Below the pieces are notes generated by a model. It was not told where the DNA came from and ran no database searches. It saw only the letters and a list, made by a program, of their open reading frames with translations. A stretch of DNA of 44,915 nt from Octopus bimaculoides (Eukaryota), in contig NC_068982.1 of assembly GCF_001194135.2 (NCBI RefSeq), forward strand, positions 17,329,770-17,374,684, written 5' to 3'. A program made the translations under genes and the position numbers. Shown in pieces: positions 7,663 to 44,448 of the stretch. The number at the start of each line of letters is the position of its first letter. Within the stretch, counting starts at the first letter, position 1.

Positions 7663-7854
7663 GTTGGATGGAATATCTGAAACTGAAAACCAACAAACTT
7701 TTCCTGGTAAACGCAATGTTGTGTCTTTCCTCTCTTGGCTTGATTACTGTGATCAACTAATCACTATTGCCAATCCCACAGTCGCTCGAGCTTTTGCTAG
7801 ATTTATCTACAGCAACTTTCTCGTAGCATTCATTGAACCAGCCATCATGCAAAC
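7663..7854 (+). CDS. FHIP2A: FHIP2A-like exon (LDGISE...FPGKRNVVSFLSWLDYCDQLI...EPAIMQT)
   Basis: ttccag acceptor, gtaatt donor, 192 nt, phase 2/2. Motif FPGKR...SFLSW.DYCDQL. Confidence 0.95.
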
Positions 7855-8210: not shown

Positions 8211-8750
8211 TTAAGTTAATATTTTAAAATCAACCTTGCAGATAAAGTATGCTAATCTCTTCATCATCACCATCATTTAATGCCCATGCTGGTACCACAT
8301 AAAAAACCCCCATGTTGGTGGCACGTAGAAAAGCACCTGTACCAGTGCCACACCAAAAAAGCATCCATGCTGGTTTCACGTAAAAAGTACGCAGTGCACT
8401 CTGTAAAGTGGATGGCATTAGGAAAGGCATCCAGCTGTAGAAGCCATGCCAAAACAGACTGGGACCTGATGCAGCCCTCTGACTTGCCAACTCCCATCAA
8501 ACCATCCAGCTAGTACCAGCATGGAAATTGGATGTTAAGTCATGATGATGATAATGTTCCATGCTGGTGTAGGTTGGATATTTTAATAGGATCCAATGGG
8601 TCCAAGGACTGCATTGTGCTCTATTGCCGACTTTGGGATGGTTTCTATGGCTTTCACATGACTTATTTGTTGTTCATACACTCATCCTTTCGGTGGCTGA
8701 GGCTCCGGTTATAAGATACTGCAGTGATGCATGATTTACCACACACTGTT

Positions 8751-9841: not shown

Positions 9842-10851
9842 GTAAATATCCTTTTATTATTTTTTTATCAATTTTTGCTCTTTAAATTCTGAGTTCATAT
9901 TCCATTTGGATCAGCTTTAACTTGCATCTTTGTTCAGGCCAATAAAATAAAGTGCCAATCAAGTACTGGGGTTGATTTAACTGACTCACCCCCCTCCCTC
10001 AAATCTCTGACCTTGTTCCATTATTCATCATCACCATCATCATCTTTTGACATCCATTTTCTATGCTGACATGGATTGGATGGTTTGACAGGAGCTGGCA
10101 AGGCTGGAGGGCTGCACCAAGGCCCCGGTTGTCTGTTTTGACATGGTTTCTATGGTTTGTTGCCCTTCTTAACATCAACCACTTTACAAAGTGTACTGAG
10201 TGCTTTCTACATGGTGCCAACATGAGTGCTGTTTTATGTAGCACTGGTACGAGTGCTCTTTACATGGTACTGGCACAGGTGCTCCTAACGTGGCACTGGT
10301 ATGTTTGTTATTAAGTGGATTCACAGAATCATTAAAGCATCAGCAAGAATGCTTTGCAGTATTTATTCTGGTGCTTTACTTTCTGAGTTCAGATCCTGAA
10401 GTTGGTTTTGCTTTCATCCTTATAGGGATGTTAAAATAACTGTCAGGTATGGAGATCAAAGTCATTGAAATCGTTGTCACTTCTCAAAATTGCTGGTCTT
10501 GTGTCTAAAATTAAAAATTATTATTATTGTTTTTATATATGAAATGAGTGTAGTGGTAAGAGTGGTTTTAGTATAAATCATTCATGGGCAAACTGAATAT
10601 GTTGAAAATGTAATTCTGGATAGATTATATCAAAAAAAAAAAAAAGGCTTGACAATCATGGTTGGAAAGCCTTTGATTAGGGGTGACTTGAGACTAAAAA
10701 TCAACATACCTCAAAAACTGTGGTTTTTTGTGTTGAATTTGTTTTGTCTTTTTTTTTTCTTTTTTTTAACAATGTTGATTTTATAAAAGTATTTTGTCTT
10801 TAATTAAACTAAAATTTATTGTTTTTGAAAATGTGTTTCTTATTCCTGTAG

Positions 10852-12870: not shown

Positions 12871-13297
12871 AGACTATGAGCGAATCAGATGACTCAAAGA
12901 GTAAGGATTTGACTCAGACACCTCCCAGCAGTGTTGAAATGGAACGATTAGCAGAAGCCATTGACGTACAAACTCTTTCTAGTGATGATTCTTCCCATGT
13001 ATCACCTTTACATTCTGTTTCTAAAGACGGAGATCAGAACTCCCCACAACCCGATGACCAAACAGTTTCGCTTCAAAGTAATTCAGACACTGAAAAAAAC
13101 CACATTGATTCAGCAACAGACAATGTTTCCGTGGCTGAAACATCAAAACCTCAACAACAGCAGCAGCAACAACAACCACAACAACAAGCTGTTTCAGAAA
13201 TAAATGATTCTGATAATCTATTCCTCTCTCAAGATAACAAAGCTCCTGAGATGACTATTAAATATTATCGCTCAGAAGTTCATAAAGTTATTAACAG
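12871..13297 (+). CDS. FHIP2A: FHIP2A-like long low-complexity exon (S/D/Q-rich, polyQ, ends YRSEVHKVIN)
   Basis: aatcag acceptor after a T-rich tract, gtaagg donor, 427 nt, phase 1/2, open over 141 codons. C-terminal EVHKVIN joins SFLCL in the next exon, as in FAM160B EVHKIVNSFLCL. Confidence 0.88.
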
Positions 13298-14324
13298 GTA
13301 AGGACCCCTTTCTTTGATTTAGATGTTGTTTTATAGTTCATAGGTGCAGACACAACCTTATTATTAAGAAGTTTACTTTGCAGTCATGTGACTCTGGGTT
13401 CAGTCCCACTGTTTAGCACTTTAGGTAAGTGTCTTCTGCTACAATGCTTTGGTTTGACCTAAGCCTTGTTAGTGAAATTTGGTAGATGGGAATTGTGCTG
13501 TGGAAGCCCTTCAAATGAACTGTAGCTATTCTGGGGCAAGGAGTGTTTTTTGTTTGTCTCGTGCTAGCATCACTTAAAAAGGATTCAGTACATTCTTTAA
13601 AGTGGTTACCATTAGGAAGAGCATCCAGCCATAGAAACCATGACAAAACAGACAACTGGGGCCTGATGTAGCCCTCTGGCTTGCCATCTCCTGTCAAACT
13701 GTCCAACCCATGCCAGCATGGAAAATGGACGTTAAATGATGATGGTGATGATCATGTATGAAGTGACTTGTGTTTAGAGATGCAGACACGTATGGAAACG
13801 CTGCTTTTCTACCCGACTAAAAGATTTTTAAAAAAAATACAAAACAATAAAGTAGCTCAGTTACTATTACTATTTTAATCATTTCGGCAAATGTAGGAGA
13901 CAACTCCCATACTATTCAAACTCTTATTAGACCTCCTCAATGAAGTATAAATTTCACACTGTACATATTGAAGTAGTGATGAGACAATCATGAAGTAATC
14001 ATGAAAACTAAGCAAACTTAAAAAACTATAAATCACTGAGTTTATCGCTTGAGCATTTAAACCAGCCAAATCTGGCCCAAATATTTCACCTGTGTGAAAT
14101 AAACAGTCACATCATCGAAATCTCAAAGCTATGTGATAATGCAGGATTCATTCAAAATGACATGAATAAATAAACATTAGCGTTACATTTGATAGAGTAA
14201 TCTGGATGTTAAAAGGTTGTTTACTTGGTAATATATATTCTAAGTTCTTACTTTTCAAGCTGTCAGATGAGAGCATGTCACTTCTTGTTATACTTCTATA
14301 AGTTTCTGGTCTTTTTCTTTGTAG

Positions 14325-17010: not shown

Positions 17011-17148
17011 TTTAAGTCTTATGAAAACATGTGCCAAGACTGGAAATGGCCTAATCAAATGGATTGCAGTACAGAATCAGACCATGGCTTTTACGAAGGT
17101 GCTTTTCTTCAGATGTTATTTTCAAAAGTCTCTCAGATGCTGCATCAG
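17011..17148 (+). CDS. FHIP2A: FHIP2A-like exon (FKSYENMCQDWKWP...GFYEGAFLQMLFSKVSQMLHQ)
   Basis: ggacag acceptor, gtttgt donor, 138 nt, phase 0/0. Motifs W.WP and F.EG.FL..LF. Confidence 0.93.
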
Positions 17149-18851: not shown

Positions 18852-18992
18852 AGTTATGCTGTGAACCTTCAAGTTACATCTGTGATCTCTCGTCTATGTC
18901 TGTTTCCTCAGCCAGTTTTGCATGACTTTTTCTTGGATCCTGCTCTGCCAGTAACAAAAGATATTAAATTATTATATTCAGTCTTGCAAAAG
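18852..18992 (+). CDS. FHIP2A: FHIP2A-like exon (SYAVNLQVTSVISRLCLFPQPVLHDFFLDP...YSVLQK)
   Basis: tttacag acceptor, gtcagt donor, 141 nt, phase 0/0. Motif Y.VNLQVTSV.SRL.LFP.P. Confidence 0.95.
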
Positions 18993-19883: not shown

Positions 19884-19987
19884 GTTGTTAGTGATATAAA
19901 ATCCAGGAAAAAATCAAAGGCAAACTTCTCTCAGATGCTTCAAACTACTCGCAAGCTATTGATTAATGAGCATAAAACCATAGACAG
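19884..19987 (+). CDS. FHIP2A: FHIP2A-like exon (VVSDIKSRKKSKANFSQMLQTTRKLLINEHKTID)
   Basis: ctttgtag acceptor, gtaagc donor, 104 nt, phase 0/2. Its position and phase fit the V.D...R....NF...L...RK.L region. Confidence 0.88.
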
Positions 19988-21708
19988 GTAAGCAACTACC
20001 TTCGTCGCCTTTCTGAGCATGTTAGTTCCTTTGACATGCTTACAAGAATGTCTCTCTTTATTGCTACTAATTACTTTTTGGCATGCATCATTCAACTGAT
20101 GTCAGCAACATGGTACTGAATGTGATTTAGAAGTGTCAGGGAAGAAAGATGAATGTAAACCAAATTTATTTAGTGTTTTGATAAACTTTTATTTTTGAAG
20201 TATTCTGAATGAAAAGAAAACATTTATGGAAAATGAAATACTTATACTCAAAGAGTGAGAAATTTTAATAACATATATTAAATAGTTATTAGATATGTTC
20301 TGTATGTTTTGGTTGTGAGGTTTCAAATTGATAAAACTAAGGGCTCCATTAACAAAAATCAGTATTTAGGCAATATGAAATTGAAGCTTGAACTTGAATT
20401 GAAATTCAACAATACAGTGGGGTTCTTTTTCGTACTATCCACCTTTATGTCTTGTTTATTGAATACACTACTGGACCAGTTATCTTGCAATCTTTATCAT
20501 CATCATAGTTTACTGTTCACCTTCCATGCTGGCATGGGTTGGACGATTTGACAGGGGCAGGCTAGGCAGGAGCCTGCACCAGACTTCTGTGTTTGTTTTG
20601 GCAGGTTTTTTATGGCTGGATACCCTTCCTAACACCAACCACCCAGCAGAGTGGACTGAGTGCTTTTTACGTGGCACAAGCGCAGGTGAGGTCAGTTTGG
20701 CATGGTTTTTACAACTGGATGACCTTCCGAACACCAACCACTTTACAGTGTGGGCCGGATGCTTTTTAAGTGGCACCAGCATTGGTAGGGTCACCAAGTA
20801 ACTTGCAAGACAAAGATCCCTTGGGAAGGGAGGGGATCCTTTCGAGCGTTGGACCTCGTGGAGGCAAAGTGGCTGAGTTCCTTTTGAGTGTTGGGCCACA
20901 TGGAGGCAATGACTGAAACTTTTGGCATTATGTCATGCTTAAGAAGAAGACCCATCAAACTGAGCAAAATCACAGTTGTGGCAGATACCGGTGTCACACA
21001 AATTGGCACACATACCATTGGCATGTAAAAGCACCCAGGTGTTGTGCAAATGGCACCTGTGCTGGTGGCATGTAAAAGCACCCATTACACTCTTGGAGTG
21101 GTTGGCGTTAGCAAAGGCATCCGACCCTAGAAAACCATGCCAAATCAGACTGGAGTCTGGTGCAGCCTTCCAGCTTACCAGCCCTGGTCAAACCATCCAA
21201 CCCATGCCAACATAGACAATGGATGTTAAATGATGATGATGATGATGATTACACAGTATTCCCGGATTTCTGGAAATTCTGGATTTCTTGAAGGTAAATA
21301 AGAGGTCCGGTACTGTATTAGTTTAAGTTTGAATTTCAATTTCATATTTAAAAGAAAATCTTAGAGTTAAATGTTTTTCCTCTCTTGGGTTTTAGTCTAG
21401 AAAAACATTGGAATTCTAAAGTTGAGAAATTTGTCATTTTGTTTTTTTATTTTATAAGTTTGATAGCAATAAAGTTTGTAAATCTTAAGAGAATTAAAAA
21501 ATGCTCAAGAATATAGCAGTTATTTTGGCATTTAGTTTCCTAAATACCAATGATGACTCAGTTGATTTTTTTTTTTACTATGTTATAATAGCATGCCCAT
21601 ATCATATCTTTTTTGGTTCTGCATGTTTAAATAGTTTTTTTTTTCTTTTTCTTTGTCATGTTGATATGTGAATAAATTTTCTTTTTTTTTTACTTTCAAT
21701 CTGTTCAA

Positions 21709-22154
21709 CAGAGCTGACCAGAAACCCTAGCATGCCTGGCAAAATGCTTAGCGGTATTTCATCTGTCTTTATGTTCTGAGTTCAAATTCCGTCAAGGTTG
21801 ACTTTGCCTTTCATCCTTTCGAGGTTGATAACTTAAGTACCAGTTGCATACTGAGGTCAGTCAAACTGACTGGACCCTCCCCATACATTTTGGACCTTGT
21901 GCCTAGAGTAGAAAAGAATATTAAATTCAAGGAAGGCGGTGATCTGACAGAAATGTTAGCATGCCGGGCAAAATGCTTAGTGGTATTTTGTCTGTCTTTA
22001 CATTCTGAGTTCAAATTCTGCAGAGGTCGACTTTGCCTTTCATCCTTTCAGGGTCAATGAATTAAGTACCAGTTACATACAGAGGTCAATCTAATCGACT
22101 GTTCCCCCCCACAAAAAAAAAAAAAATTCAGGCCTTGTGCCTAAAGTAAAAAAG
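21709..22154 (+). mobile_element. SINE family B head-to-tail dimer flanked by an 11-bp direct repeat
   Basis: Two monomers. AATCTGTTCAA at 21698-21708 and at 22155-22165. Confidence 0.8.
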
Positions 22155-23157
22155 AATCTGTTCAAGCAGGTTTTCCCCTCCCCCTCTGATAAGGATTATA
22201 AGGGGGTTTTATGAGCTTCTGTCACTTCGTAGTCTTTATATTATTCATAATTATGTCATCTTAACTTCTTTTGATCCAGGTAAAAATTACTAAGGTTTAA
22301 AAATTTATTTATTTATTTCATTTAGGTGCATAAAAATCAATATTTTTGTTTCTTTGAATGCCAGTGACATTATCATCATCATCATCATCGTTTAACGTCC
22401 GTTTTCCATGCTGGCATGGGTTGAACGGTTTGACCAGAGACTGGCAAGCCAGGAGGCCACACCAGGCTCCAATCTGATCTGGTAACATTTCTACAGCTGG
22501 ATGCCCTTCTTAACGCCAGCCACTCCTAGAATGTAATGGGTCCTTTTTACGTGCCACCAGTGCAGGAGCTAGTCAGGGGGCACTGGCATCGGCTACGTTT
22601 CGATGGTGCTTTTTACGTGCCACTGGCACAGGAGCCAGTCAGTGGGGCTGGCATCGACCACGTCCGGATGGTGCTTTTTATGTGCCACTTACATTAATGT
22701 TTTTTTTAATCCAATGGACTGCTTGCCTCACCATATTATCTCCCTGGGATTAAGCTTCTAGAACCTAAATAGGTTCCATTTATAATTAACAGATTAGAAT
22801 TACATTACTCTTCCTCTTTCCTGCCTCCTCCATTACCCTCCACCCATCCAACACCACGTCCTCTGTTATTCCCCCCACTACCATCCTCTCATAACAATAA
22901 ACCTAATCCATCCATGATGGTTGATGGGCTTTGTTTTGCCTTGTTAGCTACAAGGTGACCCCCACCAGTGCTGGTCCGTCAAAAGTACCCAGTACACTCT
23001 GTACGTGATTGATAAACCAAATCAGGCAAAAACAAGACAAGGTCTTAAGAAGACCCCTAAGTTGTGCTGGTACCTTGATGAAATGCACCCAATACACTCT
23101 GCAAAGTGGTTAATGCTTGGAAGGGCGCCCAGTCATAGAAACAATGCAAAAGTGATG

Positions 23158-23390
23158 AAGGTGACGAGCTGGCAGAAACGTTAGCACGCCGGACGAAATG
23201 CTGAGCAGTATTTTGTCTGCCATTACGTTCTGAGTTCAAATTTCGCCAAAGTCGACTTAGCCTTTCATCCTTTCAGGGTCGATGAATTAAGTACCAGTTA
23301 CGCACTGCGGTCAATGTAATCAACTTAATCCCTTTGTCTGTCCTTGTTTGTCCCCTCTATGTTTAGCCCCTTGTGGGCAATAAAGAAATA
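23158..23390 (+). mobile_element. SINE family B, full-length, nested in a family D copy. Degraded B copies also at about 7360-7500, 10320-10440 and 12215-12360
   Basis: Family B consensus, with family D sequence on both sides. Confidence 0.85.
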
Positions 23391-23979
23391 AGAAAATATG
23401 CAAAAAAAATGAGACATTGGAGCAAAGCACATGGTTCTTCAACCTGTTGGGTCCTACCAAACCATCGAGCCCATGCCAGCATGGGAAATGGACATAAAAT
23501 GATGAATATGATGAATTATGTGGTCACTCAATGTAGCTTCCTCAATAAATTATGGATGTCTCTTTTAATTTCTAAATTTCAGGGCAAAGTTACCTTTAGT
23601 GAAAGGGTTATTGTAACTAAAAAAAAAAAAAAAGTTCTAAGTGTTTACTTTGGTTAGTTATATCTATAATATGGGACAAGTGTCAGGTTTGCATTCAATA
23701 AACAGGGCCAATAGTAGGTGAAGCAAAGTGATACTAGACTGTATTGTTTTTCTCTTTGCTTTCCTGTTGTCTTGTTATTTATTCTAAATTTTGGTTGTCT
23801 TGTCTTAAACTTGCCCCTGCATGCTTTTACTATTGATGAAATCCAAGATGTGATGAACAACCACTTTATCGTTATTTCTTCTTTTTTGTTTTGAAAAAAA
23901 TTTAATTCTATTTTGTTTTAACTAATTATATATTTACTTCTGTGCATGTGTGTGTTGTCTTCAAATGACTTGTCTGCAG

Positions 23980-24012
23980 CATGCGGCATGAAAGTGTCCC
24001 ACCAATTTTCTG
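23980..24012 (+). CDS. FHIP2A: Candidate 33-nt cassette microexon of the FHIP2A-like gene ((S)MRHESVPPIF(C)), possibly also an alternative last exon
   Basis: tgtctgcag acceptor, consensus gtaagt donor, symmetric phase 2/2, no stop in frame, upstream ACTAAT (23921). No homology support that I recognise. Confidence 0.6.
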
Positions 24013-26729
24013 GTAAGTATTTCTTTCTCTTCTACACTATGTATTCAGGATTTAGCCATTCTTACTGCTTCTTCAACAAATACTAATCTGCATGTCTGCT
24101 TGCTAGTGTTGTTGTTGCTCTTGAAATATCTTCCTGCTTGTTCACTGTTTGTTTCTTTGTTTGTCTTTTTCTTTATTGCTACTCCCAAAGGGGGTCCAAA
24201 CCTTCTCTATTGCCATTGTATTGTGATATTAGATAAAGGGCATTACTTTGCTTGCTTCTACTTGTCCAGATGAAATTTAGATAGAAAAGGCATTTTTTTT
24301 TTTTTTTTTAATAAACATTTGCAAAAATTATTCAGTCTATATTAAAGTCTAAAGCAAGTAATTAAGTTGAAGCATAAAGTTATCAAGATCAAAGCTCAAA
24401 GCAAGGTCACATGGTTGACTTTGTATTAACTCTGAAAGCTGACTTACCAGATTTGTGCAGTCTCAGGGTATTGTGGGGTGCTTAATTGTGTTAGTGATTA
24501 CAAAATGGTTAGCGTTAAGTTCAAGTTCGCGGTCTGCAAGAAGATTTGTAGTGCAGTTGTATGAGTACCAAAGAGAATTGATGTAGAGCAGTTTAAACAA
24601 CCACATATTGTTTAACTTATTTTGATTTCTAAGACATGATTCTTTTAAGTTATCTAATTATGTCACTCTATCCCCCAGATATTCAGCATATGTTTGATGG
24701 TTTGGAAGCAGTTTTATTTCACTAGTTGGAAAGTTTTTGACAATCAGTGAACACCATAGGTGTAATCAACTGTTAGAGATATCTGGTGGTTATTACACCC
24801 TTCATATTTGACTATGTCTGCCTCAGTTTGTTTACCCTGCATTAGAAAATGTTGAAGTTTGGACATTTATCAGATTATGTACACAGTAAATGCTCCTTCT
24901 GTAAAAATTGTTGCTTATTTTAACAATAAGTGAATGTTCTTAATACATATATCAATATCTTAATACATATATAAAGATATAAAGGGAATTACAAATTGCC
25001 CAATCAGAGATCAATGAGATACAATGATCTAAGAATAATCTGTTGTCAGATGATTGATTGGCATTGGTATCTATGNNNNNNNNNNNNNNNNATCATGACA
25101 CCTCTCTCTCTCTCTCTTTTTCTTTTTTACCTTTTTAAAGTAACCTTTAGAGTATGGCTTCAGCCATGGAATATTTCCAGTATCCTGAAACTGTTGAATA
25201 ATTCTGCTAGTTTAGGTATAGGTGTTTGCTACCAGCTGTGATTGGAATTTGCTCTTAATTTCATCTTGTGCAATAAGGTGGCATTTGAAACAGTCATGAT
25301 GCAACGCTACTCTATTTCAGGACTCGTGTAGAGCCAGAAGACATAGCGGTGAGCAGGTGTTTTTATAAGGTTTGGTCTGTGGGCATCAGATGTGAAATTG
25401 TCTCTGTACATGCTATAGAATATCCAGGATATCTAGAAACATGATTTGATGCTAGAGTCAACAATTGCCAGGGTGTTCAGTCATGTTGAATCATGTTTTG
25501 ATTTCTATCCTGATCATTTCTGCTGTTGCCAGGACTACACAAATGTCATTCATGCGCACACGTTTATTGTCTTCTAATTAGATCATCAATAACTCTCAAT
25601 AATGTGCAATAGAATGTCAACCTCGTTAAAGCTAATTGTTCGTTGAATCTTGATACGTGAAGTCACATGCCAGGAGTGTTGTAGCCTAGTGTTGAAGTCA
25701 ATTAATACTGTACATACCACTATCTTCCCTTGAGACAAATACTTCCAACTGCCACTGGACCACTGAACCACCGACAGAAATGTGGAATGGTGGCCATGTG
25801 GCAACATCTTGTTGAACTGTTTAATTGCAAAAATGCTAGAAACAGTTTCTGCCGTTATGATAGAGGAAAGATGTTTCTGTGTTCAAATTTAATCAGGGTT
25901 AGTTTTCCTGTCATTCTGTATGGGGGTGGGTGTTAATAAAAATGAATCACTGTCAACATTACCACAACCATTATTTATAAACATTTCATGTTAGACCTTT
26001 GGCTTTCATTTAGCATTATGCCGAAAAATTGTCCAACTGTGCATTATTTCTTCATTACCGTAAGATGTCTATTTATTCACTAGTCTAGAAACCTAGTTTT
26101 TTTTCCTTTTTTTTATCCATCAGATACATATTTTACTGGCCACTTAAAAATCTTTGTTTTGTTTTTTTTCTCTTAATTTTCTCTTACCTTTTTTTAATCC
26201 CTTATAAAACCTTGAATTTTTGTGGATTAGAAAAATTCTCTTTGCACTTGATACTAAACATATTCTGTTCTTATCTCTAATGATAACATGGACTTCTAAT
26301 CCTAGCTTCCCAGATTGTTCTGGGTTTTGTATGCATAATTAAAAATATGTTGGTTGTCAACATATCTCAGACATAATGATATTCATGTTATAAAGATGGA
26401 CTATGCTTTTTTTACTAATGTATTACAGTAACATAATGGGATTAAGTCAATTGGTGACATCCTGTTTTATTTGTGTGTGTGTGTGTGTGTGTTAGACGTT
26501 GTAATGAGTCAAAAACATTTTAAGCCTCATCCACATGCAGGCACACACATATGTTCATGCATACATACAAAATCTTTGTCCCACATCTTATATATATACA
26601 CACGTACATGCTGTTTATAATATGTTTGTACTGTATGTCAATATGTAAATGCTAATAGAAATATAGAAAGAAAAGCATAGACTCTTTCATCATAATTATA
26701 ATTTATTTGGTTAAACATTTGCTATGCTT

Positions 26730-27002
26730 CTGTTGTGGCGGACTTCCCCAAGTAAGAAGTAAATTGTTGCACTACTGATAAATAGTGGACAGACACAGCA
26801 AGTGGTGTCAGTCGGCAAGGACATGTCAGTGGCGACAAGGAGTTTAACTACAAGCAGTGGCAGATAAGACTAACACAGAACTGAACTAAAGAAAAATCTC
26901 AAAGCGGGGAACTGTTGTGGCAGACACTCCCAAGTGAGTAGTGGGCATTTCCACTACTGATATATAGTGGACACACACAGCAAGCGGTGTCAGTCTGCGA
27001 GG
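26730..27002. repeat. Two ~91-bp direct repeats (26730-26820, 26912-27002), period 182
   Basis: Both read ctgttgtggc.gac..cccaagt.ag.agt...cactactgat..atagtggaca.acacagcaag.ggtgtcagtc.gc.agg. Confidence 0.8.
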
Positions 27003-27070
27003 TACGCCATACGGGCCAGTCACACAGACGACAAAGTTATGTTGTCATAATGTGGGACATATCAGCTTCC

Positions 27071-27300
27071 TTAACCCTTTTGATACCAACCTGCCTGAAA
27101 CCACCTCTGGCTCTGTAGTACCAATGTCTTGTTTTCATAAGTTTTGAATTAAAATCTTCCATCAAACCTTAGTCACAATTTATGTTCCTAACACTAGCAT
27201 AATGATAACTAAGTTATTTTACTAAATTCTTTGTTATATTTAAAATTAATTGAAAGAAACACAGAGCATCTCAACAGAAATATGGTAACAAAGGTGTCAA
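27071..27300. mobile_element. Second piggyBac-like MITE (~230 bp)
   Basis: TTAAcccttttgatacc ... ggtaacaaaggtgtcaa: imperfect TIRs, left TTAA intact. Confidence 0.55.
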
Positions 27301-28880
27301 AGGAAATTATCAGTATTCGATAATATTTTCCTAAGATTGTCAATTAATCATTCACAACAGCATTATGCAAATGTCCAGTGTGTTGGGTGGGGGTGCAGTT
27401 TTACTCCATTAGATAACTGTTCTTTCCAAACTATCTCTGCTTCTGTGATAGGAAACCTCCCACCTTAAAATGTTCACATTTACATTAAAAACCTTCCATC
27501 ATGATTTTATTTTAAGAGGCAACAATTTCTAATAATATTTAATTATAAAAATATAATAGGATTTTTGAAATATTGAATGGCTTTAAGAGGCCACTGGATT
27601 AAAATACAAATCAAAGGAGTCCATTGACAAAAAATGGTTGAGAACCACTGACCTCTTGGTCAGTGTCTGAAAAAACAAAATGTGAATAAAAATGGAACCA
27701 GAAAATTTGGTTGAATGTTTACAACAGAGTAAACTCTATTATAGGCATCTCTTTGCCAAATTTTCTTCCTAACTGTCTGAATTGTTTTTCTACTCTGCCA
27801 TTTATCCTGCATGGCTTAGAGCCGCCCTGTTTTTTGTACTGATGCGACAAAAACATTGTTCTAATTGATATACCACTCCAGCTGACATTGGAGGCCCAAC
27901 ATTGATAGCCACGTCCTGAATGTCCTATTCTCCAGTGCAAGGAAGCTTGATGATAGAAGGTGGAATTTGAACTTAGAACATAAAGAGACATAGCAAATAC
28001 TGCAAGTCATTTTCTCAGATGTTCTAATAATTCCACTAAACCATTGCCTTGAACTTTTTACTTTCCATTGACTACAAATTGATAAAAGGCAAGTTGAAAT
28101 CTTAACTTGAAGGTCAGACAGTTAAAGCAAGGCATTCTATCTAATGCTTTAAATCATCATTTAATGTCTGTTTTCTATGATGGTATGGGTTGGGGTGGTT
28201 TTAGAGGGCTGCACCTGGCTCCAGTCGTCTGTTTTGGCATGGTTTCTACAGCTGTATGCCTTTCCTAATGCCAACCACTTTACAGTGTATTGGGTGCTTT
28301 TCATGTGGTACCAGCACAAGTGTTCTTTGTGTGGTACTGGCTGGGTACTTATTACGTGGTGCTGGCACAGGGGCCTTTTATGTAACGCCAGCACCAGTGG
28401 TTTTTAGGTGGCATCAGCACAGGCACTGAATGGTTCTGCCAAATCACTACCTTACTTTGTTATCACAAGTTAAAGATGTAAAATTAGGTCTTGCACCGTT
28501 CAGATATATTTTTGCTTGTAGGGCGCATGAAAAGACATTCGAGCAAGTTCGTTGCCAGTGCAGGTGGCACGTAAAAGCACCCACTACACTCTCAGAGTGG
28601 TTGGCGTTAGGAAGGGCATCCAGCTGTAGAAACTCTGCCAGATCAGATTGGAGCCTGTGTAGCCATTTGGTTCACCAGTCCTCAGTCAAATCATCCAACC
28701 CATGCTAGCATGGAAAGCAGACGTTAAACAATGATGATGATGATGATTCCTGAATACAGAACTTTTACCAAACTCAAGCACACACACACGTGCATGTTTA
28801 TCTCGTTTGTTAAGATCTTTAGATACCTTTGTTATAGATTTATGTTTTATTAAATTTTGCTCTTTTCTTTTATTGTGCAG

Positions 28881-29001
28881 CATGGACACAGAAACTTTCA
28901 ATGAAATGTCTGCTGTGATTGTACTGGAAGAATTTTGCAAGGAACTTTCAGCTATTGCCTTTGTGAAACAGTATGCTGTAATTACTCGACTATCTTTGTG
29001 A
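28881..29001 (+). CDS. FHIP2A: FHIP2A-like terminal coding exon (MDTETFNEMSAVIVLEEFCKELSAIAFVKQYAVITRLSL*)
   Basis: Pyrimidine tract + gtgcag acceptor, phase 2. Hallmark C-terminal VIVLEEFCKEL.AIAFVK followed by TGA. Confidence 0.95.
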
Positions 29002-29063
29002 AATCCCTTGGAGCTATATGTGATATTAATGGAGAGAAAATGGTAAAAGAAATACAAGTCAAT

Positions 29064-29563: not shown

Positions 29564-30114
29564 NNNNNNNNNNNNNNNNNNNNNNNNNNNNNNNNNNNNN
29601 NNNNNNNNNNNNNNNNNNNNNNNNNNNNNNNNNNNNNNNNNNNNNNNNNNNNNNNNNNNNNNNNNNNNNNNNNNNNNNNNNNNNNNNNNNNNNNNNNNNN
29701 NNNNNNNNNNNNNNNNNNNNNNNNNNNNNNNNNNNNNNNNNNNNNNNNNNNNNNNNNNNNNNNNNNNNNNNNNNNNNNNNNNNNNNNNNNNNNNNNNNNN
29801 NNNNNNNNNNNNNNNNNNNNNNNNNNNNNNNNNNNNNNNNNNNNNNNNNNNNNNNNNNNNNNNNNNNNNNNNNNNNNNNNNNNNNNNNNNNNNNNNNNNN
29901 NNNNNNNNNNNNNNNNNNNNNNNNNNNNNNNNNNNNNNNNNNNNNNNNNNNNNNNNNNNNNNNNNNNNNNNNNNNNNNNNNNNNNNNNNNNNNNNNNNNN
30001 NNNNNNNNNNNNNNNNNNNNNNNNNNNNNNNNNNNNNNNNNNNNNNNNNNNNNNNNNNNNNNNNNNNNNNNNNNNNNNNNNNNNNNNNNNNNNNNNNNNN
30101 NNNNNNNNNNNNNN
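29564..30114. other. Assembly gap (551 N). Other gaps: 986-1085, 25076-25091, 44396-44405
   Basis: Runs of N. Confidence 1.
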
Positions 30115-32175: not shown

Positions 32176-35100
32176 AATGTCCAAAACCGTATACTTTGGT
32201 TTAGCTTTTAACACACGGTGCGGACCGGAATAAACTACCTGGAAAGGAAGCTTAACTGCATCTTTGCGTAACATGAGTCCAGGAATTGCTATCGTGTGGA
32301 ACCAACGTGTTAATCGACTGTGGTCTCGTTATTAATGGAGGTAATTCCGCCATGTAATTTCACAGCCGGTGAATATAGCTGGAAGGATCATGCTGGGTAG
32401 CTGTAGCCAATATCGTTTTACCAGGCAGTGTAAGTGTCGAACCATAAAGTTATTCTGCCGAGGAGTAACCTAGGTTTTCGTTAACAGCGGTACGTAAACC
32501 TAGCAGTGCAATAGGCAGGGCTTCGAACCATCTATCCAAATCGAAATGTGCTCGGAAAGCTGCGTAAAGTTGTCGATGTAAACGTTCTATCATTCTGTTA
32601 GACATGGGGTTGTCAGCTGTTGTACGAATTCGACGCGTACCTCGCAGGTTAGACAGGTCGGCGAGAAAAACTGGACTGGAACTGACGACTCCACGTCAGG
32701 TCGTTTTGTCATAGGTGCTCCAAAGCGTGAAGTCCATTCGATCTTTAGGGTTACTCCTCATGTAATTGTACTCTGAGTACTTGTGTTGTAGTCGAGTATT
32801 CATTTCGTACTCTATCCCTATATTAGTTGAGTGTGTAGGTTGCCATCCATTTTACAGAGTGTCCAAAGTGGGTTTGTTTTACATGGCACCAGCACCGTGT
32901 GGGTTGTCTTGTAACTCACAAGACTAGAGAATCCCCGAGGCAACTGTAAGAGATGAAATGTTTTTTAATTTGTATTTGGAAAAACAGCCTATATAGGTCA
33001 AAAGATACATTTTATCCTAAAGTTGTGGAAGAGGACCTGCGATATATACGTGGATGTGCTTGAAATGAGCGTCTGGAGTAGCGATAGTCCTTAACGGTAT
33101 TTTGATGTGGTGCTTAGTCCTGGTGTTTTGGAAGGATATACAATGGCGCGCCCAATTACGAATGTTCTTCTGCATTTTAAGCCAAACAAAACCATTTGAA
33201 ATTAATTTCGCCGTTGCCAAAATACCCTGATAGAAATCAGAGAAGTCGATTCGTCTATGATTCTCTTGGAGGCACGGTCTAGGAAATCCAGTAGATGCAT
33301 CAGACCATATAAGGGAAACACTAGAATGCAGTTATAATAGACGATGACTGATGTCGGGAGTTGTAATAACTCGTCATTGTTCTTTTGATTCATAGTAATC
33401 ATTTCCAAGTTAAAAGTATTGGCAGAATGCAAAGCATTGACAAAAACACAGGAGAAGGTGTCTGCTGCAGAATTATCAGCACCCTTCTTATAACGAATAT
33501 CCTCACTAAACTGTGAGACATAATCAAAGTGCTCGATGTCCCCAAGAGAGTATTTATCAGACTTAGACTGCATACGTCAAGGGCTTATGATCAGTATATA
33601 GTGAATGAAGGTTCGCCCTTCTAAGAAATGACAAAAATGTTTCACAGATAATTACGTAGTCATAATTCGCTTTCGAAAGTACTGTATCTCGTTTCTGCTG
33701 GTTTGAAACGCTTGAAAGAGGTTGCTTAGCATCATGAACAAACTGTTGCAGTACCGCACCGATTCATACGTCAGATGCATCTATTATCAACGATAAATTT
33801 CTTTATTAAACTACGCAGGGCCGAACACAGAGGGGGAAGAGGAACGTCTGGTACCGGATGGGCTAATAGTGTAACTTTGGTTAACTCTTCTTTGATATCG
33901 TTAAAAGATTGCAATTCTGCTGGATTTAGAGAGATGGTTTCGTTTTTTCTTCTTTTACGATTACGTAACAACACTCTTAGCGGAAATATAGTTTCCGTAC
34001 AGTGCGGAATAAATCTTCTGAAGAAATAAGACCAAGAAATTCTCGCAACCTCTTCAGCAATGCAAGAACAAGAATATTTTTAATGGCATATATTTTTTCA
34101 TTTAAAGAACAGATTCCATCTTTATCAATAATATATCCCAAAATGTAATAGAAGAAGCACCAAAAAGACATTTACTGGGGTTAATTATAACTCCGAACTT
34201 TGACAAGCTTGTAAAATGGTTATTCAAATGCTGTTTGTGCTGCTCCACCGTAGGGTTAGCAATCCACAAATCGTTGCTATAGGCAATAACTAAGTCTAAA
34301 CCACGAGTTCAAATGACCAAAAGGCATTTTAAGAAATTCTAAAAATCCAAAAGGAGTAGTTATGCTATTTTAGGAACATCAGCAGATTCTATAAAAATCT
34401 GATGATAAGTGCGTACTAAATCAATTTTAAAAGCAACAACATTACAACCGTGTAAGGAAGCTGAGAAAATAGGAATATGTGGAATTGAGTACTTCTCAGA
34501 ACAGTTAAAGCATTCAAATATCTGTAGTATCCACAAAGACACTAAGCTCTCTCAGATTGTTTGAAACCATATGAAGTGGAGAAGACCAATTATTATAGGA
34601 AGGTCGAATTGTTCCAAGATCCAACATGTGACTAAATTCGCCCCTAGCAATTTTTAGTTTGTCAACGGTGAGACACCTATGTCGCAATGAAACAGATCCT
34701 TTAGTGATGATATGATGTGTAACAGAGTGTACCGGACTCTCATTATTAAAAAAAAGGGCGAGTGATGTCTGGAAATATCTTAAGGATCATATGATAACAA
34801 ATAGATGTAGAAGGTACAAAGAAAAGAGGACTGGCAGTATCACGTTTACTGCACGGACCCTGCTAAGACAAATCCGCTTCCAGCTCTATCAGTTGTCTGT
34901 GTTTCAAGTCTACAAGCAGACAAAAATGATGCAGAAAGCCGACTTCAAGAATAGAATATGGAAGATTCGCATATATAAAGATCCGCTTAAACTGACGCCT
35001 CAGATTAAGATTCAACGTCATAGATTTCTCACCGTAAGTGGAAATGAGAGAATGGTTAGCAGCTTGTAATGTGATAGTTGATGGTTTTCCTGAATCGCAT

Positions 35101-35790
35101 AAGAATTTCACTGGTCAAATGCAGCAAGTTTTTCCTGTATCTACAAGGAATCGATACTTTAAAATCGTGTCACAGACAAAAAAGAAAAACAAAAAAATAA
35201 CGTGATGTATCGAAATTTCGCCATGTGATCTAGTCTCACTTAATTCCTGGTTACGCCGTTTTCCCGTGGTTGAGTAGATGAATAGGAAGAACATGGTTGA
35301 ATATACTTGTGTGCATTAACACCAAAACTATTATGATACCAACAAAACAACGTAAGGTCGCCAACGAGGACCGAAAGAACGTTTTCTAGAAGTCCTCCGG
35401 CCACGAGAATTCAAGCGTGTAGAATACCTGGAGAATTTCAACTGTTCGAGCTTATCTGTTAAAGTCTGAATTCTATCTTCTGTTGTACGAAATATTGCCA
35501 ACTCAGAGGAAATAGAAAAGACGAAGGCAAGAGAATAAGCTTTTACATTACCAGTATTTGAAGAGGCAATATCCGTAATACTATCTGCCGACTTGGGTAG
35601 TCAGGCTCTGCTCTCTTATTGGTGTTAAAATGGCTTGCAGATTGGAAGGGAGGTGCGAGAAGAGCACGCTTCATGTGGGTTTATCAATCATTAAGTCTCT
35701 CATTCTTCTCGACAATTGAGAAGGCTTCTTATCTTCTGCAGGTATTCATCAGAGATATCTTTTAAAAATACTGGTGTAGAGTATATTTGT
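32170..35790 (-). mobile_element. Degenerate Ty3/Gypsy LTR retrotransposon internal region (gag-PR-RT-RH-IN)
   Basis: Minus-strand fragments in Gypsy order: gag (KPSQL.RRMR.L, LPSNLQAIL, CWYH.SFG..A.K...PC at about 35790-35300); protease FLVDTG (about 35150); RT (FSKID-like FKIDLVRTYHQI, 34360-34540; LREFLGL); RNase H (IYTDHKPL.YA..S.SDKYS...IEH.DY.SQF); integrase (zinc-binding region ...WARHC, HIHVYIAGPLP, MIERLHRQL, YSGPHRVL). Many stops and frameshifts; no LTRs recognised. Confidence 0.88.
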
Positions 35791-36394: not shown

Positions 36395-38380
36395 TGTGGT
36401 GGCCGGTAAGAAAGTCACAGGAAAAAAGTCATAATGCCATCATATTTATATATGATGGCATTACATGTATGTGAATAAAAATCAGGTTTTGTTCATTTCT
36501 TAAGCACAGTAAGGTAATCAAACAAAAATATTTAAGGCAGACAGACTGGAAACAGCTTACATAATATCGTGGCATTACATGTATATTCAATGTTTTTTTA
36601 TGCTGATGCTTAAGAACAATATTCCATCCGACGCCACAAAGAAACTCTGTTACAGTCTTGTGGTCCTCACGTCGAGCGACACACAAGTTGCGAAGGCGTC
36701 CCTGTAGCTGCACATAGCGTCGACGAACTCTTTGAGAGGAGTTGCCAACAGCATCCTGCTCAATAATGGTGCTTACTGTCGTTTCTTCACGTTGAAACCA
36801 TTCAATGACACGCCAGAGTGAAGGATGGTAGTGACCAACGAGGTCGAAGTATTTATTATTCCACCCTTCGCAGATGTTGTTGGTACGGGCGTTGTTGTTC
36901 ATAGTGGTGTCATGCATATTCCAAAGGTGAGAGGCAAAACATAGGTGGAATGTAACGCATTCTCAGAGGCATCAGGGCATCACTGGACATGGCAACTGGC
37001 TTCTGAATCACTCGAAAGGAGTCAATAATATAAGTACAATCGAAGTATATGAGCAAATCATCGGCTTCAGGTGGATCTTGTGAACTCACAGTTTTGAGGT
37101 ATCTCATACCTTCATTAACGTTTTCTAGGGGCAAAAGAGCTAGAGCATCAATCATGCCACAAAACAAACGAAACTCAGTACTGGTATTATACTGTATTCC
37201 CAAACCCAGTTCCTGGATCTTACGCCAAGTGGACTGCGTAAGATAATAGAAACAACCTTTGCTCTCTACGTCGCGGCCAAACACTGCAAGAACAGCTCTC
37301 AGTACACCATCTTCGAAGTCAGTCACCTCGGTTTGTACATTAATAGAATAGCCTAGGTCTGCACACTTATCAACTATAGCCTGAAAGAGATCTTCGTTGG
37401 TGATACGAGTCTAGTTTGGAAGAAGAGCTGTATACTGAAGTACCAGCAGTATCACCGAAAGGGACACGGATGAAACAGATCTGTTTGAAAATATTTGGAG
37501 CCATAGCAAAGTTGCCATTCATATATATACAGGGTCGGATTAAGACCCATCGAGGCCCTAAGCACATAAATGATTTTGGTGCCCCCCCCCCCAAGATTAT
37601 GTAATTCAAAATATAAACAATAACAAACCATAAAATAATTTTTTATTTTTCAAAACAGAACAAAACAGTAAGAGGGAAAATAATGTTTATTTTTGTATAC
37701 TTCCACTTTATTTCTATTTGAAAAGTTTCCTCCTACATTTTTTGAATTGCGAAGTCTTTAATCAGATCCTCAGAATTAATCTTAGGTAACACATCTGCAC
37801 CTATACTTAGTAGAGATAAAGGCATCCTGAATATTGTTTTAACAAGTTTAAAGTGATTTTTTTAATGCCGTAAACCATTTACTATACCTGTGGTGCCCCT
37901 TCCTTCCTTTGATGCCCTAAGCACGTGCTTATTTTGCTTAACGGTTAATTCAGTGCTGCATATATAGAGTATCAGCACCAGCAGGGAGTCTGAGGCCATC
38001 ATAGTACCAAACACTAGAATGCGGTTGTTTGCATTCGGTCCGTTATCACAGAGTAAAAACTCTTCGGGATTAAGACCAACTGTCATAGTGTAGTGAGTAG
38101 GAAGTTTACTAGGATCTTTTAGCAAACGTGATACAGGCAGAGTAGGCCGTAGGTTGCGCAGAGTTCGTAACTCATTAATTTACCATCAATTCTGCATATT
38201 CCTTTACAGAGACTGATTGACATATTAACCTTAAAAAAGTGAGAATTCGAGAGTTAACATTTCTATTAAAGAAAGACGCAGAAAGAGTGTCTTTTTTTTT
38301 TTTCCTGTGACTTTTTTTCATGGATTCATAAATCTTCTCCAGGATAGAACACTAGTCTATCGTATATAACTTTTCCCACC
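36395..38380 (-). mobile_element. Degenerate Mutator-like (MULE) DNA transposon, interrupted by a hAT insertion
   Basis: Transposase fragments EEFLLCDNGP...RILVFGT, LYM(N)GNFAMAPNIFKQ, TDFEDG...GCFY.LTQSTWRKIQELGL and RTNNICEGWNN. A 17-bp inverted match, aaagtcacaggaaaaaa (36411-36427) vs ttttttcctgtgacttt (38298-38314), is a TIR remnant. Outer ends approximate. Confidence 0.85.
37530..37958 (-). mobile_element. Non-autonomous hAT element (429 bp) with imperfect TIRs and an 8-bp TSD
   Basis: Ends CAGGGTCGGATTAA and TTAATTCAGTGCTG. Right flank CATATATA, left flank CATATATA+TA. Internal minus-strand peptide LSLLSIGADVLPKINSEDLIKDFA resembles the C-terminus of hAT (ZMYM1-like) transposases. Confidence 0.8.
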
Positions 38381-39989: not shown

Positions 39990-40900
39990 TTTTACAAATT
40001 TTTACAGTTCTAGTGATGGATTGGATCTGTAGTCTTTGAATTAGCCTTCTGTCTGATTTTGAGAATCCTAATTTCTCAAGATTGGTATTTAGGCAGTGTG
40101 TTACATATCCCAGGGCTCCAATAATTACAGGTATAACCCTGAACTTGTAGTCTGAATAGAGTAACTACAGATTTCTCTATAGTTCAGCATAGGTGTTCTC
40201 TTTTTCGTTTATCTTCAGCTTTATGTTAACATCTGTTGGACAGGTAATTTCCAATTCTGTGCACAGTTTCTCTTCTCTATCCCAAATCATATCAGGTCTG
40301 TTGTGCTTACATTTTATTGAGGCCTTCACTGGGACATTCCCCCAATATCCCTTTTTATTATGAGTGGCTATGGCTTCTACCGTATTGTGGGTTCTTATTT
40401 CTTTGTCCTCAAGATTATTCTTCTGACAGATTTCATTATAGAGTGTCCTAGCTACAACATCATGTCTCATTGGTAAATAATACTGTGATGACATTTTCGG
40501 ACAACTGCTTATGATGTGGGTGATGTCTTCAGTGTGAACTCCACAAAGTCTGCATCGGTTGTCACATTTTACTGCTTTTCCTGCATCTCTATCCCTTTTG
40601 TGCATCAGGTACTTGGTTGATATTTCCTGTTCCTGGATTGCAAACATATACCCTTCAAAAGTGGGAGGTAGTAATCTGGTTATTGGTCCATGATAAACTG
40701 CTTTGATGATCGATGTTACTATTATCATGGAGCTGTCTTCTAACATATCCATGCGTAGTCTTCTGCTCAAATAGGCTCATCCTTTCATCTGATGATACAT
40801 TACGGTAGAGTGGTGCGACTTTTTTGGGCATGTATTCTAGGTTATCAGACAAAGAGTGTTTGCTCAAGGAGCTGCTTTCCAAGTCTTATGACGTTATCAG
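39990..40900 (-). mobile_element. 5'-truncated non-LTR retrotransposon with a restriction-like endonuclease (R4/NeSL-type) in PIGS intron 1
   Basis: CCHC finger CRLCG...EDITHIISSC, RHDVV, PD-(D/E)xK core HNRPD..IWD.......EITCP, KE..YAEL, then VIPVIIGALG in the next frame. Confidence 0.85.
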
Positions 40901-42923
40901 CCCCTTTAGAATCACTTCGCAGACCCCAGTTTGAGAACCAGTGGTCTAGCCAATGGAAAGCGGACACTAAATGATGATGATATGTATGTATATGTTATTT
41001 AGTAATAGAAGCAGGGCATAGTACCAGAATTTTCAACTCAAATCAAATATAACAAACAACTGCTAATTGTTGTTTGAATATCTCTGTAAGTGGAGTCTGA
41101 ACAGGCTGCTTTGCACAGGCATTGAGTCTATCATTTAATATGTATGTTTCTGGTCTGTGTAATATATCAATTATGTAAGATCTTTCTCAGTTGAAATGTT
41201 TCAATATATATGGCCAAAACAGTAAGTCAGCTACTAAGTTATGAAGATGAATATGTATAGAGAGGGAGAAAGCGAGAGGAAAGAAAAGATATATAAAGTG
41301 AGGTAGTGGTGAAAGGAAAGATAGGAAGATGTGTGAGTGAATAGTATTGAAAAAAAAAAAAAAGGGATGGTTGTATCTGTAGGTTTACATGCAAAATCTG
41401 GAAAAGGACAAAGAGCAGAGAATTGAAAAAGTCATAAATATGAGGCAGTAGATGGGGAAGAAACAAACCAGGTGTCATAGTATGTGTGTGTGTGTACTGA
41501 TGTTGAGCTGTTGTTGCATGTTAGACTAGTCTAGCTCTCTGTTGAGTCCATCATGAGAATCTCTCACCACATGCCTTTGACACGGTGAGGCAGGCAGTGT
41601 TGTGTAGTGGCTGTGGCCTAAAGGTTTGTGGTAGTGCTACATTAAAAGCACTCATTCCACTATGTAAGGTGTCTGGTGTTAGGAAGTGTATCCAGCCATA
41701 AAAACCCTACCAAAACAGACAGTGAAGCCTGGTGCAGTCTTCTGCTTAGCCAGCCCCTGTCAGGCTGTCCAACCCATGCCAGCATGGAAAAATGGACGTT
41801 AAAAGATGATGATGATGATGAAAGAATTAAGGACAGATACTTTCCTGTTTGGTGATGACCTCATTGACTTTTTGAAGTTCAACTTGGAGAAGAAAACAAA
41901 AGTGATGAGGGAATGGCTCTCTCCCAGTGAATTTGTCAAAAAGTGGTTGACTGGCAAAAATGGCTAGGGTGAATGGAACTACTCTAAGCATGCCCTTATA
42001 AATCAGAGAAAACAGCTGGGTAAGGGCTTATGCCCTTGGTGGTCAGGGCAATCATAGATCTGTGAGGTTTCTTGACTGATCCCTTGGAGGCTCTTGTTTC
42101 AGGAGGACTACATCAGCCATGTCTTCTCATATTTCTTGCTTAGAATATATATTTTTATCCTGCCCACGACTCTTCTCTTTTTAAGTTCTGTATTTAAGAG
42201 ATGAGGAATTATGTACATTATTTACATCTTGTTTGTTGTTAACACAACGTTTTGGCTGATATATCCTTCAGCCTTCATCATGTTGGAAAGAAGAGCTTTA
42301 CAAACACAAGCGTTTCACATATTAATGAAGAGGCAACACAAGATTTGGTGAAGTGGCTGGCCATGCTATGGATATAAACCAATGGGGGAAGTGAACTGGC
42401 CAATGTTACACATCATCATTATCGTTGTTTAACGTCCACTTTCCATGCTGGCATGGGTTTGACTGAGGACTGGCAGGCAGGGAGGCTGCACTAGGCTCCA
42501 ATCTGATTTGGCAAGGTTTCTACAGCTGGATGCCCTTCCTAATGCTAACCACTCTGAGAGTGTAGTGGGTGCTTTTTATGTGCCACTTGTATGGGAGCCA
42601 TTCAGGTGGAGCTGACATTGGCCATTCTTGAATGATGCTTTTTATGTGCCACTGGTAAACTGTGACCTGTCCACTGACAAAATTCCATGCTGCATCATGA
42701 CAAATTAAATTTGAATATTGAAGTGTATCTAACAGTTTTTGTGTGACTTTAAATGGCTTATAAACACCTTCTACACTGCAATTGTTTATACATATTGTAT
42801 TCTTTAAACACCTTTTAATTTCTTTTTGCAGGTGGCACTGGCATCGGCCACAACTAGGATTTCCTTCCAACAATGGTCATACGTTTAAACTTAAAGAAGT
42901 AATTCTTATTTTTATATTCACAG

Positions 42924-43063
42924 AGAAAGCCACTCAGGCATATGCAGCTCTTGGAATTGGTTTGATCTGTGTGTTTTTTGGTATTCCGCTTTGGTGGAAG
43001 ACAACTGAGGTATACAGAGTACCGTTACCTTATGATGAAATTGAAGCACTGACCGATACCAAG
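42924..43063 (+). CDS. PIGS: PIGS-like GPI transamidase subunit exon 2 (EKATQAYAALGIGLICVFFGIPLWWKTTEVYRVPLPYDEIEALTDTK)
   Basis: ttcacag acceptor, gtatgc donor, 140 nt, phase 1/0. First TM helix followed by the PIG-S hallmark G.PLWWKTT..YR..LPY..I. Confidence 0.92.
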
Positions 43064-44315
43064 GTATGCAGTATTTGTTGTTGTCATTGTCCATTGAATG
43101 TTTCTTGACAAGCTGTATCATCTTATGATGCTAGTGTTACTAGTTTAAGGACTAATATCCTGTTAACGACATTAATTTTAGTTTTCTCTTGGTTGTTGAA
43201 AGTTTCTATGTTGTAAGACGACCTTAGATCTTATATAGATTAAGTATTCCAATTATAGTTTTTTTGTCAACCTTGAAACCAGTTGCTCTGAGAGAGAAGG
43301 AAGAAAATTTATGAAGTAATAAAATATCTTGAAAGTGTTTCTCTCCATACATTAATCATATCAAAATCAATGACCAAAAGTTGGCAACTAAATCATGTTT
43401 TTCACTGTTTTCTTCCTTGTCTATTCCTCAATGTTGCTCACCCACCTCTGTAATATACCATATTTTAAAGGCAGATTAAAAAATATGTATTTTTCCATTG
43501 CTCAGTCAAAGGAAGGAGGATAGGACCCATATCCTTTTTAGTCCGAAGAAGTTGTCCTCAAACTGGAGATTTGGCCTGAATGCTTGGAACAGAATTGACT
43601 CTGTTGAAGGTACTTGAGGACCAGATGGTGGTTTTTATATCAGGTGATGAATTAAATCTTCCACTCTAGAACAGGAATGGCGTCTTTGACTGCGTTCCAC
43701 ATAGTTTCTGTTTACCAAATTTCTGTTGGAAGGCTTTTGTCAACCTGAAGCTATGATTGTCGATACTGCTGCATAGAGGGACTGAACCTGAACTCCATGA
43801 CAACACAGCCATGTCTAAACCCCTTATCTGAAGTGAATTTAGGAAGTTTGAAGTAAATTTTGAGCTTCTGAGATAAAGGAACTTTGCTTTGAGACATTGA
43901 CAAATGCTCTTATGACATGGAAAAACCAGTTTTAATAATGATTTTATAAGTGTTTTTCTCTTTGCTGTTGTCTTGTATCTGTAAAGTATGAGAACTTTTA
44001 TGTGTGGTTATCTGAACAGAAACTCTAGATATCATTCTGCCTTAAATGTCTGTGTGTCACCACACCTGCATAGAAACGTGTATACACATGAATGAACAAG
44101 GCCACTTCTACTTGATCTTTTGATCTACTAGAAATAGTTACCACATCACCCTCATATCACACTGACTATCTTATGAAAGACACAACATTGCATGTAGATA
44201 CTATGCCTGAATAAAATATTGGGTGATCATGGCTGGTATGCTTTGGACATAAGTGTGCTGGTTTAGGACTGACCTGGGGTTAAACCACACCACAATAACA
44301 TATATGTACACTCAC

Positions 44316-44358: not shown

Positions 44359-44448
44359 CCTAAGAAGGCTTACCTGATTATCTTTATACATATTTNNNNN
44401 NNNNNCATAGCAAGTAACCTAATCTGAAATCGTCTGTTGAAACAAAGA

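Follow-up and report, generated by a model that had tools for sequence, protein, structure and literature searches.

RBFOX sites downstream of a donor usually enhance inclusion of an exon, and upstream ones usually repress it. A second kind of element, the QKI/How-type ACUAAY core, competes with SF1 at the branch point and in its bipartite form is accompanied by a UAAY half-site 1-20 nucleotides (nt) away. Neural microexons form a third system: they arose in bilaterian ancestors together with the eMIC domain of Srrm234, and the exons that depend on this domain, through SRRM3 and SRRM4, combine UGC near the 3' splice site, a CUAAY branch point, a long AG-exclusion zone, a weak 3' splice site and a UCUC-rich pyrimidine tract, most of these features being common to mammalian targets, and low conservation of microexon programs between phyla has been reported (PMC8797185). 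In this study, a 44,915-nt stretch of Octopus bimaculoides DNA (NCBI RefSeq assembly GCF_001194135.2, contig NC_068982.1, positions 17,329,770 to 17,374,684 of the forward strand; hereafter the window, whose own numbering is used throughout) was analyzed around a 33-nt exon of the gene FHIP2A at positions 23980-24012. According to passages of two papers, human FHIP2A assembles with FTS and Hook and takes part in Rab1-linked cargo binding, its N-terminal region binding Rab1 on membranes, and no role is stated in these passages for the C-terminal helix (PMC8730729, PMC12772502).

The octopus exon is open in the required frame, is included in the RefSeq protein model of FHIP2A, falls in a linker between two conserved parts of the protein, and is surrounded by a set of splicing motifs that recalls the systems above. 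We propose, with a probability of roughly 60%, that it is a genuine FHIP2A coding microexon, most likely used as a cassette, probably recognized through an eMIC-type architecture, enriched in neurons and modulated by RBFOX. As a feature it is ordinary: a trafficking gene carries a short exon whose inclusion keeps the reading frame. The initial annotation of this DNA knew of no description of the switch that it proposed at this exon, which needs qualifying: inclusion of the exon is already part of the RefSeq annotation, and our literature searches found nothing on this exon, on FHIP2/FAM160B1 microexons, on cephalopod microexons or on octopus RBFOX splicing.

The exon and the FHIP2A gene model

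Assignment of the gene to FHIP2, as the initial annotation had it, agrees with the Pfam matches of the concatenated exons, namely RAI16-like (PF10257, E = 4.7e-33), DUF5917 (PF19314, E = 7.8e-23) and then the KELAA motif (PF19311, E = 6.8e-14), and with the RefSeq name FHIP2A. The named relatives found by protein search, in which homologues map to the exons, are likewise FHIP2A, FHIP2B and FAM160B1, and not FHIP1. The insertion point of the 33-nt exon falls between DUF5917 and KELAA. Vertebrate FHIP2A/FHIP2B (FAM160B1/B2) and bivalve FHIP2 have the same order of RAI16-like, DUF5917 and KELAA, but no insertion at the microexon junction.

An exhaustive HMMER search with the last exon as query retrieved an 828-residue protein with 100% identity across that exon, which an exact-sequence look-up identified as XP_052831793.1, RefSeq FHIP2A isoform X5 of O. 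bimaculoides. By tblastn and depth-first spliced mapping, its residues 103-828 lie on the window at 100% identity in 15 exons, all with GT-AG borders, and residues 1-102 are encoded upstream of the window. The protein carries the microexon residues (...KTIDSMRHESVPPIFCMDTETF...; over a longer stretch across the insert, ...LLINEHKTIDSMRHESVPPIFCMDTETFNEMSAVIVLEEFCKELSAIAFVK...) in the order KTIDS-MRHESVPPIFC-MDTETF, and these map to exactly 23980-24012. The exon that the initial annotation had proposed, with its precise borders, is therefore a real coding exon present in isoform X5. The gene model comprises the following features:

2686-2790, 3749-3871, 5189-5317, 6717-6910 and 7663-7854, plus strand: FHIP2A exons 1-5 in the window, from spliced mapping of XP_052831793.1
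9762-9841, 10852-10961, 11564-11756, 12871-13297 and 14325-14415, plus strand: FHIP2A exons 6-10, from the same mapping
17011-17148, 18852-18992, 19884-19987, 23980-24012 and 28881-29001, plus strand: FHIP2A exons 11-15, from the same mapping
12871-13297, plus strand: large low-complexity exon of 427 nt, serine/aspartate-rich, with poly-Q (QQQQQQQQPQQQ), within a low-confidence stretch (residues 448-606) of the AlphaFold2 model described below
19884-19987, plus strand: coding exon upstream of the microexon, end of DUF5917; donor CAG|GTAAGC; residues 744-777(+) of XP_052831793.1 at 100% identity
23980-24012, plus strand: microexon, which completes the Ser778 codon, encodes MRHESVPPIF and gives the first 2 nt of the Cys789 codon
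28881-29001, plus strand: last coding exon with the KELAA-motif helix ...VIVLEEFCKELSAIAFVK...; opens C|ATG GAC; stop codon TGA at 28999-29001

Read directly, the exon is CATGCGGCATGAAAGTGTCCCACCAATTTTCTG, 33 nt in length, with ctgcAG before it and GTAAGT (24013-24018) after it; all sequence details of the initial annotation were found to be correct. The upstream exon ends in ...GACAG|gtaagc and leaves over 2 nt (AG) of a codon. Since 33 nt stand between phase-matched exons, the frame is kept and, relative to the skipped form, there is a net insertion of 11 residues, MRHESVPPIFC. The exon is thus short enough for a microexon (51 nt or less), divisible by three, open in the phase that its neighbors require, and bounded by canonical AG/GT borders. 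Past the FHIP2A stop codon, AATAAA occurs at 29061 and 29065.

The label "isoform X5" indicates that several protein isoforms of FHIP2A have been predicted, and the collection searched here (15 billion proteins) represents the gene by one of at least five; XP_052831793.1 is alone in its 90% cluster. In the Gnomon pipeline, an exon without homology support needs the support of spliced reads. The insert residues occur in no homologue, which means that the microexon cannot have come into the model through protein homology, and given its position in the middle of an 8.9-kb intron, it would probably have needed spliced reads to enter the model.

Several minor observations concern the exon itself. 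An internal AG (aaAG|TGTCCC) would allow an in-frame 18-nt version of the exon (23995-24012, plus strand; S-VPPIFC); this AG has no pyrimidine tract and an AG-free zone of just 15 nt, and there is no sign of its use. Recursive splicing was rejected, as no 5' splice site is regenerated after the acceptor (GACAG|CATGCG), and so was an origin of the microexon as a duplicate of the start of the last exon, with which it shares the opening CAG|CATG, the local alignment score being equal to the shuffle mean. A scan against Rfam and a scan for open reading frames (ORFs) on both strands around the microexon found nothing.

The insert among homologues and in the protein

In the alignment, each of the 18 homologues has a gap in place of the insert; they comprise metagenome-derived sequences, vertebrate FHIP2A/2B and a protein of the bivalve Sinanodonta woodiana (KAL3865122.1). 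Among the homologues available, the insert is lineage-specific. The linker from the DUF5917 exon to VIVLEEF measures 44-49 residues in the cDNA-like metagenome contigs L003, L008 and L016; in octopus it measures 46 residues with the microexon skipped, compared with 57 when it is included. To judge from these sequences, skipping would leave the linker at the length that it has in every other FHIP2 examined.

An AlphaFold2 model built on the alignment with the 18 homologues (mean predicted local distance difference test score, pLDDT, 66.7; predicted template modeling score 0.61) has a helix at residues 758-769, a low-confidence coil at 770-791 and a long C-terminal helix at 792-827. The insert, residues 779-789, lies entirely in the coil, and pLDDT is below 50 at 778-780 and 783-785. 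In this model, the KELAA helix is tethered to the helical DUF5917 body by the coil, and inclusion would make this tether about twice as long without disrupting either element. The earlier proposal that 11 residues are added just upstream of the conserved C-terminal helix agrees with the Pfam boundaries, the alignment and the model. The large exon 12871-13297 also sets the octopus protein apart from its vertebrate homologues, in which most of this segment is missing; a comparable insert is present in the bivalve.

The intron that hosts the microexon can be followed further than the microexon itself. Annelid-like, host-derived FHIP2 genes in Joint Genome Institute metagenomes (L012, L017, L004 and L005; Ga0209367_1005055 and others) have a phase-2 intron just before the KELAA exon; this intron position and phase are common to octopus and the annelid-like L012, and are also seen in L019. 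The intron position is therefore old, and the microexon was not seen there. A word-indexed protein search with the spliced C-terminus and with 266 residues of conserved exons returned no cephalopod protein, the matches being shorter than 500 residues and at most 54% identical; with only such short and distant matches, the word index could not put the microexon to the test. A metagenome scan with a degenerate microexon pattern likewise gave zero matches, and the control scan for VIVLEEFCKEL found 19 FHIP2-like loci, none of them from a cephalopod, which makes the negative uninformative on conservation of the microexon.

Splice-site architecture, motifs and competing readings

The following elements surround the exon:

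23818-23823, plus strand: TGCATG, RBFOX-type hexamer, 157 nt upstream of the acceptor
23849-23977, plus strand: AG-exclusion zone upstream of the microexon acceptor (AG-to-AG gap of 132 nt)
23921-23926, plus strand: ACTAAT (CUAAY class), probable distal branch point, the branch A about 54 nt from the acceptor
23943-23948, plus strand: TGCATG in a TG-rich stretch, 32 nt upstream of the acceptor
23976-23978, plus strand: TGC (UGC) directly before the acceptor AG (cTGCag)
23979-23983 (across the acceptor) and 23986-23990 (in the exon), plus strand: two GCATG pentamers
24013-24018, plus strand: 5' splice site GTAAGT (CTG|GTAAGT), 10.7 bits with a generic position weight matrix
24082-24094, plus strand: ACTAAT and, immediately after it, TGCATG, 70-82 nt past the donor

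The two splice sites are of very different quality. The longest pyrimidine run at the acceptor is 5 nt, the shortest in the gene (6-20 nt at the other exons), the T-rich tracts being distal (23872-23893 and 23908-23919) and the tract that adjoins the AG weak. The AG-exclusion zone spans 132 nt, compared with 22-74 nt for the other 14 exons, and ranks among the top 6 of the 2687 AG dinucleotides on the plus strand. No AG stands between the ACTAAT at 23921-23926 and the acceptor. The UGC at -5 to -3 is a motif of 3 nt and weak evidence when taken alone. The donor is strong, and its hexamer GTAAGT occurs once on the plus strand of the 8.9-kb intron (19988-28880).

This combination resembles the SRRM3/SRRM4 neural microexons in several respects. 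Like them, the octopus exon is short (33 nt) and frame-preserving and adds a few residues to a trafficking protein in a surface or linker region; it has the long AG-exclusion zone, weak 3' splice site, UGC at the acceptor and CUAAY of the eMIC-dependent class (PMC8797185), and its strong 5' splice site is also found in mammalian microexons. There is a difference in the pyrimidine tract, which is not UCUC-rich. No orthologous microexon was seen in non-cephalopod FHIP2 (18 homologues), which fits the low conservation between phyla and lends the comparison no positive support.

With RBFOX cassette exons, the locus shares three UGCAUG and two further GCAUG motifs within 280 nt, the densest such cluster of the window. 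All TGCATG, GCATG and ACTAAT motifs that the initial annotation had listed (TGCATG at 23818, 23943 and 24089, GCATG at the exon start, ACTAAT at 23921 and 24082) are present on the plus strand, and GCAUG is locally enriched: there are five copies at the microexon compared with 0-2 at the other 14 exons, and five in 300 nt is the window maximum, reached in 1.4% of first-order Markov simulations (P ~0.014). The five copies lie within about 300 nt of the exon and exceed background. Taken by themselves, the three full TGCATG hexamers do not stand out (P ~0.13). One hexamer, at +77, occupies the classic enhancing position; the locus differs from typical RBFOX cassettes in its upstream and exonic copies (-32, -157 and in the exon), the usual effect of which is repression or unsettled, and the sign of their effect here is uncertain.

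The resemblance to QKI/How-type regulation is looser. The exon has an ACUAAU core on either side, 54 nt before it and 70 nt after it, but the bipartite element is absent: near 23921 the only half-site is a UAAC (23919-23922) that overlaps the core, and near the ACTAAT at 24082 no half-site occurs. Given this absence and the eMIC-like architecture, we read the upstream ACTAAT primarily as the probable distal branch point, which is the simpler interpretation, and not as a QKI site. Motifs of the same types also occur in the intron just past the donor of exon 19884-19987, where AGCATG (~20017), ACTAAT (20066) and GGCATGCATC (~20080) lie on the plus strand, so that the exon preceding the microexon is flanked by them as well.

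Taken together, these elements suggest how the exon may be recognized. Ordinary exon definition cannot serve an exon this short with an acceptor this weak, and recognition probably depends on the near-perfect U1 site (CTG|GTAAGT), the distal CUAAU branch point in the 132-nt AG-free zone and the UGC at the acceptor, an architecture of the kind that the microexon machinery of SRRM3/4 (Srrm234 eMIC domain) uses. The exon would then be included in some transcripts and skipped in others, probably with enrichment in neurons, and the five (U)GCAUG sites in and around it could let RBFOX modulate inclusion. A lineage-specific insert that combines almost the full published eMIC cis code with RBFOX sites would be a clean candidate for bilaterian neural microexon machinery acting on cephalopod-specific targets, and would mark the DUF5917-KELAA linker of FHIP2A, a component of the FTS-Hook-FHIP dynein adaptor, as a site that tolerates isoform variation.

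It should be noted that several points weigh against a regulated, eMIC- and RBFOX-dependent cassette. There is no TCTC or CTCT in 23849-23979, which leaves the UCUC element of eMIC exons without a counterpart. The TGCATG at -32 sits in the usual RBFOX-repressing position; it lies within TG-rich low-complexity sequence and may be incidental. The AG-exclusion-zone statistic was picked after inspection of the sequence, though the zone is a published feature. XP_052831793.1 is a computational RefSeq model and does not correspond to a cloned cDNA. Finally, the 817-residue skipped product is absent from the protein collection, and with a single FHIP2A isoform there this absence is weak evidence.

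A first alternative is that the microexon is constitutive in octopus, a lineage-specific insertion that is always spliced in, with the RefSeq isoforms differing elsewhere. The sole isoform retrieved includes the microexon, the skipped isoform was not found, and the donor is very strong. However, the microexon has the weakest acceptor in the gene, its AG-exclusion zone extends over 132 nt and its branch point is distal, features typical of regulated exons (PMC8797185), and it is the skipped form that has the canonical linker length; a collection with one of at least five isoforms says little about a missing one. We consider constitutive inclusion unlikely.

Less probable again is that the exon is a chance pseudo-exon, or rare splicing noise promoted by automated annotation. 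Segments bounded by AG and GT are plentiful, 1549 of 3-51 nt being present in the 8.9-kb intron, 387 of them frame-preserving and stop-free, and no homologue carries the insert. Yet the microexon stands first among these 387: none of the others scores higher for the donor, and its upstream AG-free stretch exceeds all of theirs by a wide margin. Across the two strands of the window (about 90 kb), no other AG..GT segment of microexon size pairs a donor of 9 bits or more with an AG-exclusion zone of 100 nt or longer. The microexon also lies where GCATG is most densely clustered in the window, its borders correspond exactly to the RefSeq model, and it is not derived from a repeat within the window. 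As a negative control, the orthologous 3-kb phase-2 intron of the annelid-like contig L012 was scanned and held no comparable candidate, which indicates that the scan does not give a match in every intron. That the microexon region is unique within the window carries no information here, since 74% of the intron is equally unique.

The initial annotation had gone beyond a cassette and proposed a three-way switch on the FHIP2 C-terminus, in which the exon is skipped, included, or read through as an alternative last exon when its donor is not used, the protein then stopping at TGG TAA with intronic polyadenylation and ending in ...PPIFW without the KELAA helix. The read-through sequence ATT TTC TGG TAA is as was claimed: an in-frame TAA follows directly after the exon, and AATAAA (24310) and ATTAAA (24341) occur about 300 nt downstream, after a T-run. 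Nevertheless, the TAA consists of bases 2-4 of GTAAGT and would arise automatically at any exon of this phase with such a donor, and it therefore provides no information. The poly(A) hexamers (AATAAA/ATTAAA) are at background, with 9 in the 4.9 kb to the next exon (about one per 540 nt), the first of them 298 nt past the stop. The donor outscores all others in the intron and is almost ideal for U1, which argues against frequent non-use, and a 789-residue product ending in ...PPIFW is absent from the protein collection. Inclusion is found in the RefSeq model, the termination arm is unsupported, and we regard the three-way switch as highly improbable. We would give as little credence to the fullest version of this idea, in which a cephalopod-specific, neuron-enriched microexon under eMIC/RBFOX control would retune the tether of the C-terminal helix and change dynein-Hook cargo coupling, with donor non-use and intronic polyadenylation in addition yielding a KELAA-less protein.

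Other features of the window

Beyond FHIP2A, the window contains the start of a second gene, several transposon remnants, a dispersed repeat and a number of assembly gaps:

42764-43105, plus strand: first coding exon of the next gene downstream, PIG-S (GPI transamidase subunit; PF10510, E = 5e-13)
32450-35600, minus strand: intergenic, downstream of FHIP2A; decayed pol remnants of a long terminal repeat (LTR) retrotransposon, with PF00078 (reverse transcriptase) and PF17921 (integrase zinc-binding)
36429-37410, minus strand: two overlapping ORFs (162 and 138 residues) in different frames
40177-40770, minus strand: ORF of 197 residues
986-1085, 25076-25091, 29564-30114 and 44396-44405: runs of N (assembly gaps)

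The LTR pol pieces are split over several frames by stops and frameshifts. The two ORFs at 36429-37410 have a transposase-like look (…CEGWNNKYF…HPSLW…) and no Pfam match. The 197-residue ORF has a weak match to zf-RVT (PF13966), below the Pfam cut-off, and is probably a remnant of a non-LTR retrotransposon. The 551-nt gap lies just past the 3' end of FHIP2A, beside (TA)n and (CA)n microsatellites. According to a self-BLAST, a dispersed repeat resembling a short interspersed nuclear element occurs in both orientations, with a share of about 22% in the window and 26% in the microexon intron, the microexon region lying outside it; copies are found, for example, at 8230-8510, 10000-10310, 13416-13750, 20460-21290, 22360-22760, 28100-28710 and 41550-41860.

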